Assembly (NCBI GenBank): GCA_964035545.1
Contig: OZ037767.1
Location: forward strand, 19,484,628-19,548,627
Reading direction: 5' to 3'
Source: Bugula neritina
Lineage: Eukaryota; Animalia; Bryozoa
DNA: 64,000 nt
Shown in pieces: positions 41,824 to 51,000 of the stretch. Position 1 is the first letter of the stretch. The number at the start of each line of letters is the position of its first letter. The translations under genes were made by a program, and so were the position numbers. The notes beneath the pieces are model-generated. The model saw only the letters and a program-made list of their open reading frames with translations, made no database searches and was not told the DNA's origin.

Positions 41824-44800
41824 ATGGCATTCTCAGCCAAGGAGGCTCACAGAGCTGCTACGTTTCAAAAGAAGCGGCAGAAAGAGCAGGAAGATCTGCA
41901 GCTGAAGAAGAAAAAGATCGAAGAGGAACTCCAAGTTGGCAGCATCAGTAACAAGTTTGCTGCTCATTACGATGCCATTGAACAGCAGCTCAAGTCAGAT
42001 ACAATTGGTATACTTCATTTTATGCTTGTAATAACACTTCTAATAACCTGGTTTAGTTTTTATTCAGATGATTTGCAATTGCAGTTGTTTTCTTTAAAGA
42101 AAGTTGTTGCTTTTGTTGAATAAGATTTAAACCAAAGTTTCAAAGCGTACTTTTGTTATTTGCTGCCAGTTTATTTGACATTTCTAGCAGTTGGTAAAAA
42201 TTAGTGATAGTTTGATGTTGAAAAATCAGTTGTGAATAGTTTAGTTCCCCTACAGCATGAAATAAACTCTCAGTTCAGGTATAGCTGACACTTGACATGT
42301 GCCACATAATATGTGTCATATGACATGTGATACAGGTTGCTCATGAAAAGTTGTGATTACTTGTTTCAGGTTTGGTGACTTTGGATGAGATGAAAGCAAA
42401 ACAAGAAGTAATGATTAAGGAAAGAGAAACACAGCTAGCTCAAAAAGAAAAAGAAGCTAGACTAAGTAAAGCAGAGTTGAAGAAGCAAAAAGCTAAAGAG
42501 AAGTCACAGGTGTGTATAATATATGATTAGCCCATAGCTAATAACTTTTTACAAATAATTCATAGCTAGTAATTAATAACTCACAGCTAGTAGCTCCCAA
42601 CTAGTAACTTGTAACTAATAATTCATAGCTGGTAACTCTTGACTAGTAACTAGTGGCAAGTAACTAGAGACTAGCAACTCATTGGTCGACTTTGGCAGAT
42701 AATTTCTCGTTGTTGCAAAGTCATGACCGTTTGCGGTGACATAAACTTGATGTTTGTAAACTGCAGATGTAGGCTGTTGTATGTATCATTAGTTGAGTGC
42801 CATACATGTGATGTTACTGAAACCGGTTGATGTACACCTGGTTAGGGCTATTACTCTGGTGTTATATATATGTTAGAAAGGAGCACTGTCGTTCCAACTG
42901 GAAGATGAGGATGATTGTGAAGATGGAGAAGACAATGAAGATAGTACAGAGACTGTTAATGAAAAGAAACGACTTGGTCAGTTCTCGTCTGTTTAATCAC
43001 CTTTGATTGGGTTTTGTTTTCAGCTAGATGACAACATATTGTTCTAGGGTGTCTAACATTGCTGGGCTTGCTGTCATAATGCTATAATAGTAAAGCAGCT
43101 AAGCCATCCACATTTCTAGCTTATGGATAAACCAAATATAATGTAAAAGCTAAAATTGAAATACTTGTTGATAACCTGACTACTTTACTATTTTTGAGAT
43201 TCATAAAGAGTGTGTGTTGAAGGAATGAATCCCGATGTAGACACCAGTTTCTTACCTGATCGGGAGAGGGAAGAGGAAGAGAATCGGTTAAGGTACTGTC
43301 TTAGCCATAGTTATTAGTTCAATCAGCTGGGTTAAGGGGCGTGCTAAATAACCTTCCTAACTTTGCCTTCCTAAACCCAGATATTTATTTATCAACACTC
43401 TACCATGTTGGTTGTTGAATAATGTGAGTAATCTTGTATATAATAAGTAACTAACATTGAATTTTAGAGCTCAATTAGCTGCCGAGTGGAGACAGAAACA
43501 AGACGATATTAAGAATGAAGAGATCTTGGTTGTGTATTCATACTGGGATGGTAAAGGACACCGTAGGCAGGTGAGACAACTCCATATCCTACTATTATAC
43601 AACTTCATGTAGACTGTTTGATATAGTCTTCAGCACTTGTAGCAAGTGTTCAGATCAATGTGTTCAATTGAATAACAATAAATCCTTTTCAGAGGTCCCA
43701 ATATCCACTTTACAACTAGGAGTTGTGTCCTCCCAAGGTGAATAGGTTGAACCTTTGTATAAAGAACAAACACATTAAAAATTTGGCTGTTTGGCTGCTA
43801 CTTAAAATTCTAATTATGCTATAGAATTGCTCTGTTAGGAGATAGATATTTTGGTATAAGCACACATATTAGCAGTTCAAAAATTTTTTTAAAAATATTT
43901 CTTCATGAAGAATTTTAAAGAAAATAAACTTGAAAGCATTTTTGTGGTTTTGGTTACTAAGCAATGCTGAGGTGGCACTTCAGCATTGCTTAGTAACCAA
44001 AATCACAAAAATGAGTTCAAGTTTATTTTTTCAATAATTTTCATTTTGGGAGGACACAACTCTTAATTGTAAGGGGGACATTGGGGACCTCTGAAAAGGG
44101 TTTATTGAGTTTGTTTGAACTGATTTGACATAGATTGAATTGGACTTGCTGTTGCCTTAAACCATGTCTGGTATCCTCAATAGTACTCATTGCAACCGCT
44201 CTCTTCAATATCTACCCTATTATTCAGGTGAAGATGAAGAAAGGAAACAGCATATACCAATTCCTGCAGAGGTGTTTGGAGAATCTGAAAAAGGAAGATA
44301 TTTATGCTGAACTCAAAGTAGCCTCAGCTGATCAACTGATGTACGTTAAAGAAGACCTTATCCTTCCCCATCATTCAACATTCTTTGACTTTATAGTCAC
44401 TAAAGCTAGAGGTAATGCAGTTTTTTTTAAATTATTGACTTTCGTTTTCTAGTATTTTGATTTAGATGATCACATCATAACATAGCATATAATATCTTAG
44501 TTGTTTGAGAAAAATGAACAAAGTACCAGCCACAAGGATGGCAAACTATGGGTTTGATAAAATGCAAATCGTTTTCATCGGTAGGTTATTTTCTTGACTG
44601 AAGTTTAGTATTAGATAGTTACACTGATCCACACCTAGCCACTACAGGTATCATCAGGAACCATTATCAATGTGCAGTCAACCAGTAACTTCATAATAAT
44701 ACTTGAAGTTGCTATACATCTTGAGGGCTTGTTAGTAAGATGGAAGGTGAATAAGTCAGACAGGAAATGGGTCAGACAAGAAGTGAATCATAAAGCAGTA

Positions 44801-47800
44801 TTGTTTGTTTTACAGGTAAGAGCGGACCTCTATTTAACTTTGATGTTCAAGAAGATATTCGGATAAAATCTGATGCAGCTATTGAGAAGAACGAGAGCCA
44901 TGCAGGTGAGTTGACGGAGCTGCTCTCTGTTGTGGAAGTCCCTATATTTAGGATAATATAATTATTTTATATTTACAATAGGGTCATTCCGCGTCAACTC
45001 AACCAATGGCCCACGCCTTTGCGTCTCAGATTTTGTTCATATTTACACCAAATGGACCTACACATGTCCTGAGTACTATTCTTGAATATTTCTGGCCTGA
45101 CACAAAAAACTTTTTGAGAAACGACTATTTCCATGAACAAAGGTTGGGAAAAATTTTGAGGAAAATTTGCGATTTTTATTTTTAGACCAATTTGTAAACG
45201 TCCATATCTCAATCATTTTTTTAGACTGAGCCTTAAAATATGGTGTGTGATTTGATAACACCTATCAATTTGCACTAGTAGTAACCCATACTGCAGAATA
45301 CTTTGTGTGCATATATGCTAAGCCATTGAATATTGGCAAATTTTTGTGAATTTTGAAAAATTTCGAATATTTGCCACGTCACAAAAGGCGTTAATTTTTA
45401 TTTTACTCCCATAAATGTTTATCCATAAATAGTTGATTATGGTGACTTTATACTCCTTAATTTCTGTAATTTTGAAAATAATATTTTCCGAGATATAGAC
45501 ATCCAAAGTGAAGAAAATGTGAAAATTTGCCCAACTTCACAAGGATGTAACCCGATGTTTGAATATGGTAAAAATTTTTAAACAAGCATTTTCTGTAACG
45601 TCATTTAGTTTATTTTGTAGATTCATAAATTTGACCGTCCTTATATTGTCCAAACTTAAAGTAAATCGCACGGAAAAATGGTATGCATACGAAAATCGGC
45701 AAAATGCAATTTTTCAATGTAATATGTTGGGATCATACATTTTTTATCATTCATATTGTTCAAAATATCAAGTAGATACATATATGTTTCCTATATATGT
45801 CAAATCTTTCTGTCTGGGTGTAGTTCCCATAGATCCCTGAGCCGTTAGCCTGGTAGAACCAGTTACCAGTGGTGACCACGAGGACGTGCCTCAGAGTCTT
45901 GATGATTGGTGACTTTACCAGTTAGTACTGGCACTTCGTCGCCTCAGCATCCTTGGTGTGTCTTCCTTCACTTTAGTAAGTTTGGCAGACATCCACCACC
46001 ATCTACTGAAGATTACAATAAAATCTGATTTGTGTGTAATAGCGTGAGAAAAATTCTGCCGGTTGGCATTATATGATATTCCCAGTAAGTTTCAGGTAGC
46101 AATTGTTATTTCTGTGAGTGAATGGTGTGAAACAGCTGAAATCTTGCTGGAATCAAGTACATTAAGTAGCTGAAGCAAGGGTGGCTTAAAATACATGCCC
46201 AAATATAACACCATGGCCCTGAACACAATAGGCCGAATTAGGTCAACTAGGTCAATTAGGTGTTATCAAATCACACACCAAATTTTAAGGCTCAGTCTAA
46301 AAAAATGATTGAGATATGGACGTTTACAAATTGGTCTAAAAGTAAAAATCACAAATTTTCCTCAAAATTTTTCCCAACCTTTGTTCATGGAAATATTCAT
46401 TTCTCAAAAAGTTTTTGTGTCAGGCCAGAAATATTCACGAATAGTACTCAGGACATGTGTAGGTCCATTTGGTGTAAATATGAACAAAATCTGAGACGCA
46501 AAGGCGTGGGACTTTCTGAAATTTGGTTGATTTGACACGGAATGACCCAATAGTTATCCAACTCTAGCTAACTTATCGAGTGTATTACTCATACTAATTA
46601 GACATGAAATTTAAATAGTTGCGTTTAATTACTACATGAATTTGTATAACTGTAAACCTTACTTAAATTCTGGTTTCGGTTGCAATATTTTGTCAATGCG
46701 TAGGTTGCCATAAACTACTATCAAACATTGACACTTTTGTAACTGGGAGTTGTTTTATCGTGATATTTGTAACCTGACGTCATGTAAGCATCTACAGTTA
46801 GCAATCAAAGTAACAATCAGATATGGATTATATTTCATCTAAACTTTGCCTGTATGAATAATAGGTCATCAGTTCTAGCTTATTGTGTTAATAAGTATTC
46901 TAGATATTCTATAGACTATACATTGCTGTAGGTAAGGTTGTCTATAGACTATACGTTGCTGTAAATAAGGTTGTCTATAGACTATACATTGCTGTAGGTA
47001 AGGTTGTATATAGACTATACATTGCTGTAGGTAAGGTTGTCTATAGACTATACATTGCTGTAGGTAAGGTTGTCTATAGACTATACGTTGCTGTAGGTAA
47101 GGTTGTCTATAGACTATACGTTGCTGTAGGTAAGGTTGTCTATAGACTATACATTGCTGTAGGTAAGGTTGTCTATAGACTATACATTGCTGTAGGTAAG
47201 GTTGTCTATAGACTATAGACTGCTGTAGGTAAGGTTGTCTATAGACTATACGTTGCTGTAGGTAAGGTTGTCTATAGACTATACGTTGCTGTAGGTAAGG
47301 TTGTCTATAGACTATACATTGCTGTAGGTAAGATTGTCTATAGACTATACATTGCTGTAGGTAAGATTGTCTATAGACTATACATTGCTGTAGGTAAGGT
47401 TGTCTATAGACTATACATTGCTGTAGGTAAGGTTGTCTATAGACTATACATTGCTGTAGGTAAGGTTGTCTATAGACTATACATTGCTGTAGGTAAGGTT
47501 GTCTATAGACTATACATTGCTGTAGGTAAGATTGTCTATAGACTATACATTGCTGTAGGTAAGGTTGTCTATAGACTATACGTTGCTGTAGGTAAGGTTG
47601 TCTATAGACTATACGTTGCTGTAGGTAAGATTGTCTATAGACTATACACTGCTGTAAGTAAGGTTGTCTATAGACTATACATTGCTGTAGGTAAGGTTGT
47701 CTATAGACTATACGTTGCTGTAGGTAAGGTTGTCTATAGACTATACATTGCTGTAGGTAAGATTGTCTATAGACTATACATTGCTGTAGGTAAGGTTGTC

Positions 47801-48028
47801 TATAGACTATACGTTGCTGTAGGTAAGGTTGTCTATAGACTATACGTTGCTGTAGGTAAGGTTGTCTATAGACCATACATTGCTGTAGGTAAGGTTGTCA
47901 TGAGAACCTGGTATGAAAGACACAAACACATTTTCCCCGCTTGTCGCTGGGAGGTGTTTGATCCGGAGAAGAAGTGGGATAACTACTCCGTGTCTGACAA
48001 GGAGAAAAGTAAATTCACAGTCAAGTGA
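41824..48028 (+). CDS. FAM50: FAM50 / XAP5 family nuclear splicing-associated protein
   Basis: Exons 41824-42007, 42370-42509, 42877-42976, 43223-43292, 43468-43570, 44228-44411, 44816-44905, 47889-48028. Hallmark motifs: [110 protein letters not shown]. Confidence 0.95.
43676..44107. mobile_element. MITE-like element in FAM50 intron 5 with ~65-bp TIRs and an internal hairpin
   Basis: CAATAAATCCTTTTCAGAGGTCCCAAT..GTTGTGTCCTCCCAA is mirrored at ~44045-44107. A second ~50-bp stem lies at 43921-44029. No clear TSD. Confidence 0.7.
44981..46548. mobile_element. Long-TIR non-autonomous DNA transposon (Sola2-like) in FAM50 intron 7
   Basis: ~285-bp TIRs (44981-45264 vs 46257-46548) with termini GGGTCATTCC / GGAATGACCC. 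4-bp AT-rich TSD AATA (44977-44980, 46549-46552). The superfamily is inferred only from the termini and TSD. Confidence 0.82.
46909..47899 (+). repeat. 30 x 33-bp tandem repeat made of the FAM50 last-intron acceptor plus the first bases of the last exon
   Basis: Unit CTATAGACTATACATTGCTGTAG|GTAAGGTTGT. The final unit runs directly into the terminal exon (GT AAG GTT GTC ATG AGA ACC TGG). Confidence 0.97.
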
Positions 48029-51000
48029 TGAGAAAAAAACACGGTGGGGAAGTCTCCATATGCATAATATGGAGTAACAGGAAGTGATACTAGAGCTGTT
48101 GCTTAGCAACATACCAACTATCATCTATCTGACTTGGATTTGGTTAAACAAAACTCAGTCGAAAACTTTTTCTTGAGTTTTGATGTAGATTTTGTTGAGG
48201 GCTTTCATTTATTGGTACTCTCTTGTAAATATTGCAACCATTTGCATTTTAATGATGTTGTAACCTTTCTATATCATGTACATATTGCAACATCCTTTTG
48301 TATTTTTTAGTTGTAAAAATGTTTTGGCTAATTTATGCAATATAATAATGTAATGAGATAATATAATAATATCAAATACTAAAACTCACAGCCTTTAAAT
48401 TATTGCAAATACTGAATATCTTATAAACAATGAAGCAGCCAATCTGCACCCCTTTCAATAATTACTTTCCATCAAATTACTAACTTTTGTCTAACAACTT
48501 TGTGCCATGCATAGGAGTTGTCATACTTGTATGTTGAGCCAACTTGGAGTATGTAGAAGCAGCTGCAACAAAAACGGCATACATGATTAATTCTATGTGC
48601 ATAGAACATAGTAAGTTTGAATGCAACTAAAAGTTTCTATTTCTAGTTATATAACACAGGAGCTTTGCTACAGGCATATCTTGGTGCTATGCATGGCTAG
48701 ATATTTTGTATTCCCCACAAAGTAAGAATAAAGGCTAAGCACTTACAGTATGTACTAACTATAACTTGGTGTTTTATATATTAATATAACTTGATTTTAT
48801 ATACTCGTACTTTGGCTCCATATTCTATAAATTCAAATATTTTCTTAAATCGATTAGCAATCAACATAAACTATATAATATAATCCAATCATGTTTTATT
48901 AGGTTATTTTTCATGTAGAAACTACTGCAGCGACTGATACGTACATTAACTATAAATACGCAATAATATAATCTAGTTGATGCAGTAAATGGCCTAGTCA
49001 AGGCACAAAGGGGTACACAATCATTTATATAATATAATATATAATCAGCATCAGCTCTTGCAAAAGTTTAGATTAAATTTGTGATGTATTAAACCATGCC
49101 AAAAGCACTTTTAATTGCTCAGAACTTACAGTAGTTACTTCAATGAAGTTTATTATCTCTTTTTAATGCAAGTATTACAATATGTTTAAATATTACATAT
49201 TTCTAAGCATATCGGTCAAATAATAATAATTTATTGCTTATTTTTAAAGTGCAGGGTTGCATAAGCTAAAAGATTTATTACCTAAAACTTTACTCTAAGA
49301 AACATTATCTTTACAATAACTAATACATGTTTTATGCAATCATACACATCACCTTACTGTATCACATTATCCTCCCATTACACAAAAGTTTAATATCTTT
49401 TACTATTGCAAGAATATTATTTGTTGCATAAGTTTAAAATGCACTGAAATATACAGCCACATATGTAAAAGTTGCAATTGTATTTATAAAATTGCATACA
49501 AAAATTTGCAAGTTGACTAAAAGATTTATTGCGAAGAGATTATTGAATGCAGATATTTGAAGTGTTGATTAGAAGAAAACTCAAATTTTGACCTTTTTCA
49601 GAGCTTTATTAGGAACATTATTTAGCTTTTGTAGAAATTAATTATAATTCTTGACTTATAATCATTTAAAATGACATCATTATTTAACATTATTTTATGT
49701 AGTGCAGTACTATATCATCACTAAGTATTAGAGTTCCCACAGGTCTCAGTTGGTTGGCCGACTCACATACTTCTCTGGCGTCAGCTCTTGCAGGTTTCCC
49801 TATAAACCTGCATACTGACATGAAGCTATTTATTCAAACACATAATTGAGTCTCAGTATGAGCAACTGACATGACTATGGCTGGCATTGTTCAAAGTGCT
49901 GATTTGATGCTTCACTTGTGTATTGCATTCATACATTATCTGTCTGAGAGGTTAGATGTTATTATGTAAGAATTTCGCCTTCGAATAAGATCCGAGCAGC
50001 TGTTACTGTGACTTGTACGATTACGTTTTGACATGACTTTTAACTGGCTACCTGCGTAAGCGGATTGTGCTCAAGCTTTTGAATTCTTATTAACTGTCTT
50101 TTGTCAAATAAATAATATCAATTTTATATCTGGTTAGAAGATTTGAATTATAAATTGAAGCGTTTTATTTAAATTGTTGAAATATATTTTGCAAATCTCC
50201 GATTGCATTGTTAACCAATAAACAACTTATAACACTCGAGGGCAGTTCAGTGTCCAAGCGCCGAGACAGATGGAAACACAGTTTTGTAATTTGTAAGTCA
50301 TTATGCATTAAATTAATGCTTTCAAAAAGACAATTGAAAACGTTTAGAATATAAAATAGTAATGTGGCTCTGTCAAACGAATTTAATAAATTAAAGCCCT
50401 GCTTGCAGAAAACAAAGTAAATACTGCATAGCCGATGTAAGTAATGATACAGATTAGTTGTGCATTCTCTTATTTTACAGGAAATGTAGGTTGAATTTTA
50501 AATTAAATAATTAGTTTATTAAATTTCTAATGCAAAGTTATTTTTGGAAAATTATACAATTTTCAATAAAGTTTGGAGTAAGGTGTTTTCTAACAATTAT
50601 TGCTTTTCTAGTCTAACATTTGCTTTTTACTAGCAAAATTTTATTTCAGGAACTGAAATGTGGCATATTGCCTTTGACAAAATGATTTGCATCAAATAAA
50701 TATATAGCAATAAATTGCAACATTTCTTTTTCCTGGATAAATGATCAAGCGTTTTAGATATGATGTAACGTATGACCAGGACAATTGTTGGCATATGTTA
50801 AGGACTACCTTGTCAATATATACTATGCCTGATTCCCATGTCAAACTAAACTTGTTAATAAGCAATTTAAATATTTTTATTGTTGAAGAAACACATAAAG
50901 TCTTTATTATAATACAATATGCTACAAGCAATACCAATTAGCTATGCGTTACCAGCCAATTTCAAAGTTACTTCATGACATTGCTGTCAGAAACATTTCG

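Follow-up and report, generated by a model that had tools for sequence, protein, structure and literature searches.

A 33-bp minisatellite copies the last intron/exon junction of the FAM50 gene thirty times in the bryozoan Bugula neritina

The junction between the last intron and the terminal exon of the FAM50 gene is copied head-to-tail, in 30 units of 33 bp, within the window (the whole 64,000-nucleotide stretch of DNA that was analysed). This array is an acceptor-side mirage, a structure known from amphioxus, in a rarer form in which acceptor and donor are fused. With a probability of roughly 0.7, it is a near-neutral minisatellite, the last acceptor being chosen through the downstream exon. 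It is one of hundreds of splice-site-anchored minisatellite loci in this genome. The parts of the gene that are needed here are as follows (the slash in a motif marks the splice site):

41824-48028, + strand: FAM50/XAP5 gene from start to stop codon, single copy (tblastn with Watersipora FAM50; Pfam XAP5)
44816-44905, + strand: penultimate exon, 90 nt, with donor CAG/GTGAGT (tblastn; RNA contigs have their loose end at its 3' end)
44906-47888, + strand: last intron, 2,983 nt, phase 1 (orthologue position, RNA contigs)
47889-48028, + strand: terminal exon, coding portion (93% identical to Watersipora FAM50; Pfam XAP5; contigs)

Two exons matched Pfam XAP5. The terminal exon is present in one copy in the genome, its nearest protein is FAM50 of Watersipora subatra (93% across the exon), a match that marks the host as a cheilostome bryozoan, and the 3' UTR reaches at least 48303 according to one RNA contig. 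The array overlaps the start of this exon and contains the following:

46908-47899, + strand: minisatellite of 33 bp x 30, an acceptor-side mirage spanning the intron/exon junction (TRF, RNA junction, DNA depth)
within 46908-47899, + strand: units 1-29, intronic decoys, and unit 30, the working acceptor (RNA junction, DNA depth)
47216-47218, + strand: single in-frame TAG, in unit 10 (unit translation)

TRF reported 30.1 copies at 46908-47899, with period 33 and 96% matches. The unit comprises the final 24 bases of the intron and the opening 9 bases of the terminal exon; because of a 2-base microhomology, a split into 22 intron and 11 exon bases fits equally well. The orthologue and the RNA contigs both identify the copied junction as a genuine one, so the original prediction of a real acceptor amplified 30-fold was correct. 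It was also right that TAG/GTAAG is kept in 28 of the 30 units, the AG being lost from units 2 and 23, and that each unit is 11 codons long in the FAM50 frame with a lone stop: the length is a multiple of three, and 28 of the 29 decoys are open. The upstream exon does end in CATGCAG at 44905, and splicing to any TAG/GTAAG copy would regenerate a donor. Among 120 proteins, none of the homologues had the repeat peptide. In the whole 216-Mb assembly, the unit is specific to the FAM50 locus, with 4 isolated one-mismatch matches elsewhere. This locus specificity rules out a dispersed satellite or transposon as its source. The 10-bp palindrome that had been assigned to every unit exists but occurs 28 times, and therefore not in all 30 units. 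As a driver of such arrays in general it was discarded, the self-complementarity of junction arrays not exceeding that of bystander arrays.

The fused AG/GTAAG is a by-product of Gly-Lys codon choice at a phase-1 intron. The penultimate exon also opens with AG/GTAAG (Gly-Lys codons, at 44816), yet it is unduplicated. Splicing to 44816 regenerates a near-perfect donor, and use of this donor would leave out 90 nt without a change of frame.

The last intron also holds a second element, unrelated to the array:

44975-46554, no strand assigned: multicopy element with ~300-bp terminal inverted repeats (arms 88-97% complementary)

At least 40 matches to it at 92-97% were found (40 scored of 203 candidates). 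Elsewhere in the genome these are often paired ~3.7 kb apart, and the 1.6-kb copy in the FAM50 intron therefore looks internally deleted. In pre-mRNA, a long double-stranded stem could arise from the element. An upstream FAM50 intron carries a small nested inverted-repeat element (43697-44085 of the window), with outer arms of 46 nt and inner arms of 64 nt.

The stretch 47808-48500 of the window was used as the query for contigs of public DNA and RNA runs. In DNA run X1 the array contig had ~12x the depth of the exon, and in run X4 the summed array contigs had ~14x; these ratios show many copies and are not copy numbers. The X4 lineage differs at 8 of 129 coding bases (6%), all differences being synonymous. 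The array is real and multi-copy, and it predates the split of the X1 and X4 lineages. An assembly artefact, against which the raw data were to be checked, is contradicted by the multi-copy state in two independent DNA runs and by the patterned variants that the units carry. The X4 contig that is linked to the exon reaches back to 47870, so that exactly 30 bases precede the first base unique to the exon. This suggests that the last unit of that lineage bears no private mark over those 30 bases. A private T-to-C change in unit 30 was considered as a marker and rejected, as the same contig start implies that it is not private in the X4 lineage.

FAM50 of Watersipora has a phase-1 intron at the identical position, at HA/G, which indicates that the intron is ancestral and that no intron was gained. 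The last intron of Watersipora has a single acceptor, with no GT after it and no duplication of the junction. The unit does show the AG/GT anatomy required by the model of intron gain through tandem duplication of an AGGT segment (PMC3087553), a route raised in the original prediction, but an orthologue that already has the intron without any junction duplication speaks against it; intron gain and assembly artefact, even counted together, retain hardly any probability. Watersipora FAM50 has two arrays of its own. A degenerate 31-bp donor-side array in intron 1 (L012:3196-3304) copies the donor of exon 1, and an unrelated 37-bp array of 8.4 copies (L012:10554-10865) stops ~100 nt before the last acceptor and does not span it.

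The choice of acceptor was read from two RNA runs. X7 is recorded as random-primed RNA-Seq (total RNA) and comes from the sample of X4; X14 belongs to a separate study, and its RNA status, guessed by software, is supported by a spliced contig. The RNA evidence consists of assembled contigs, from which minor branches are dropped during assembly. Each run yielded one main contig, which begins at the acceptor and whose loose end corresponds to the last bases of exon 44816-44905. The contigs of both studies thus contain the direct 44905-47889 junction, that is, regular mRNA from the authentic site. Splicing to the last or to an internal unit would alike join the upstream exon to GTAAGGTTGTC, continuing with exon sequence in the first case and with unit sequence in the second. 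Exon 44816-44905 joined to an internal unit was not found among the X7 and X14 contigs, which are pruned of minor branches. The RNA from the sample of X4 picks the last unit although this is apparently unmarked over 30 bases, and the cue therefore probably lies in sequence downstream.

No array sequence was present in X14, at an mRNA contig depth of ~100. This argues against stable ladder isoforms, because retained units would pool their words. In X7, the depth of the array contigs, per copy, was roughly 9% of that of the exon, and the flank past the 3' UTR gave no contigs; this array signal fits intron RNA. Since ~9% array RNA leaves no break in the mRNA contig of X7, branches of such size are pruned. 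Stable ladder isoforms were not seen, and rare nascent recursive intermediates may be compatible with such contigs. The proteins extended by 11k residues, or truncated, that had been foreseen are not borne out by these contigs. Exclusive splicing from 44905 to 47889, named beforehand as the outcome contrary to recursion, holds for the mature RNA contigs, minor nascent intermediates lying, if present, below contig resolution. A 440-aa FAM50 match (P0004), considered as a ladder product, instead carries an internal duplication of a different region.

These data also bear on the proposal that repeat number tunes FAM50 output. As a tunable or feedback element, the array would act through k retained units or through the unit-10 stop, with copy number or the FAM50 level setting the output. 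The unit length of 3n and the 28 of 29 open decoys would suit such a device, and FAM50 is, as predicted, a spliceosome protein: human FAM50A is found in the C* spliceosome and affects 3' splice-site choice, its knockdown shifting NAGNAG choice to the distal site (PMC9984181). This effect is, however, known for sites 3 nt apart, and the acceptors of the array are 33 nt apart. The lack of array sequence in X14 and of the repeat peptide in the homologues argues further against tuning, as do the variants among the units, 7 of 8 alleles being non-synonymous or stop in the repeat peptide, and the absence of any enrichment of 3n units in the class (see below). Since hundreds of genes carry arrays, one splicing factor among them is expected by chance. 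We regard tuning as very unlikely.

A self-correcting ladder, the central proposal of the original prediction, would work differently: part of the nascent RNA would splice to an internal unit, regenerate CAG/GTAAG and re-splice to unit 30. Its anatomical half stands, since an acceptor has been amplified together with regenerated donors, 28 units having AG/GT and a near-consensus donor. Intermediates at ratchet points leave no trace in mRNA (PMC8605326), and contigs cannot reveal minor branches. The functional half found no support in RNA, model, variants or the arrays that lack GT. Total RNA that contains array sequence showed no joint from the exon to a unit. Under a re-splicing model with uniform choice, 37-60% of molecules were stranded at units 27-29, because the remaining stretch is too short to be removed; re-splicing among equivalent acceptors therefore gives no clean product. 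A nearest-first path ends on unit 30 in this haplotype with a minimum intron of 45-60 nt, but fails with a minimum of 70 or 100 nt, and depends on copy-number parity. The splice motif shows 2 variant alleles at its 8 sites, compared to 6 at the other 25 sites; the comparison rests on small numbers, and there is no sign of constraint, the motif not being spared from mutation. It is also not strongly conserved, as the Watersipora exon starts without GT, and the intron of 3 kb is far from the long-intron context (tens of kb) of ratchet points. The preceding exon, 44816-44905, is present in RNA contigs despite its identical regenerated donor. On balance, recursion of this kind is unlikely, though less so than the other alternatives. 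Masking of the decoys by RNA structure was rejected: folding of the array gave z -4.85 against ordinary shuffles, an unfair control for a tandem repeat, and z -1.1 against shuffled units, with unit 30 paired as much as the others.

Arrays of this kind are widespread in the genome. Three AGGTAAG motifs at a spacing of 12-42 nt gave 2,018 matches, compared to 117 for the backward control. Single large satellites inflate raw match counts and make them noisy controls, so the comparison was based on the number of loci on chromosome 1. Its first 24 Mb contain at least 18 unrelated arrays, and control heptamers gave 3 loci and 1 locus over its whole length. Eight of the 18 AGGTAAG arrays come after an open frame of at least 37 codons, with caspase, ankyrin and OATP matches. 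Motifs resembling acceptors were similarly enriched (973 matches vs 102, and 763 vs 27, for the controls), and of 40 sampled arrays with such motifs, 26 run up to an open frame that resembles an exon (background 25%, p about 8e-8). Exons were called from open frame and GC; only a few have clear Pfam support, OATP and ZZ matches lying above the cut-off beside such arrays. Extrapolated from chromosome 1, the sampled motifs alone would account for an estimated total of clearly more than a hundred acceptor-side arrays.

Among the 26 exon-adjoining acceptor arrays, units of 3n were found in 10, which is no excess (p 0.36). GT follows AG in 15, a strong donor is present in 2, and 11 lack GT, some of them with 20-28 copies. 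Arrays are thus tolerated irrespective of frame and without the need for a regenerated donor. The suggestion that ~29 decoys are tolerated through re-splicing is undercut by these GT-less acceptor arrays (9-28 copies), and the lack of 3n enrichment, together with the X14 data, counts against repeat number as a regulator. The search for fused YAG/GTRAG arrays gave 205 matches, the sampled ones being mostly donor-side. Most similar to the FAM50 array is L047:1493-1883, an acceptor-side array of 17 x 23 bp with fused AG/GTGAG before a short open frame; its unit of 23 bp is not a multiple of three.

The strong genome-wide enrichment of donor-motif arrays, several of the sampled ones not adjoining an obvious coding exon, is what would be expected if selection kept the array as a cluster of binding sites for U1 or another factor, aiding splicing or blocking premature intronic 3'-end cleavage. 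Retention of the FAM50 array in diverged lineages agrees with this too. Several observations count against it: mutation has not spared the motif, many acceptor arrays are free of donor motifs, and the array is missing from Watersipora. The probability of such a role appears very slim, marginally below that of tuning.

Some introns consist wholly or largely of a junction-bearing array (L034:1234-1952, L077, L084) and are candidates for intron gain. One such array, of 17 x 42 bp, belongs to a gene with an apparent resemblance to AFG3L2/paraplegin (no Pfam match). Gene-rich regions of the genome are dense in minisatellites: the ~190 kb surrounding the sampled arrays hold 73 more (L013-L069).

The preferred reading, a near-neutral minisatellite, would account for the FAM50 array as follows. 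A duplication of 33 bp across the ancestral 3' splice site, assisted by microhomology, may have started it, and slippage or unequal exchange would have extended and homogenised it. The last acceptor would win as the sole copy before the real exon, probably by exon definition through enhancers and coupling to the 3' end, with units 1-29 behaving as near-neutral intron sequence. Persistence of the array across lineages diverged by 6% is accommodated by this neutral account only with ongoing turnover.

In amphioxus, tandem repeats that span exon-intron boundaries are known as mirages; they are described for the globins BflGb6 and BflGb9 and for Adh3, and the mechanism behind them was called unclear (PMC3087553). 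The FAM50 array resembles them in that its unit spans a real junction and many units, though not all, keep AG/GT signals. BflGb6 likewise copies the 3' end of an intron and the start of the exon (acceptor side), and RT-PCR indicates normal splicing (PMC3087553). It has 3-6 copies, in contrast to the 30 found here, where a strong donor is fused to each acceptor; the phylum is also a different one, and the class numbers hundreds. At Adh3, unit sizes are 10-72 bp, 33 among them, and regular splicing is undisturbed (PMC3087553). In human CBS 844ins68, the 3' splice site of an intron/exon junction is likewise duplicated and the distal copy is selected; it has two copies and intervening G runs that promote the distal site (PMC1802585), in contrast to 30 copies and no G runs in FAM50. 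Ratchet points and RS-exons share the juxtaposed AG/GT, and splicing to such a site regenerates a donor; ratchet points are single, highly conserved, located in long introns and have demonstrated intermediates (PMC8605326), whereas the FAM50 sites stand in tandem, lack conservation and belong to an intron of 3 kb, and the contigs showed no intermediate.

A more elaborate scheme, in which a ratchet ladder in nascent RNA is resolved to the last unit by the role of FAM50 itself at the step-2 acceptor, would amount to autoregulation. We consider it quite improbable, somewhat less so than simple tuning of output. The FAM50 locus is nevertheless a natural test substrate, as the last acceptor of the X4 lineage appears to match the decoys from about -19 to +11. 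An acceptor so alike to its decoys is still picked, which places the cue downstream or in a hidden recursive route. More widely, cheilostome minisatellites are strongly anchored on donor and acceptor sites, well above motif controls, and one such array is also found in Watersipora. This genome makes the origin of junction-anchored minisatellites testable at scale.
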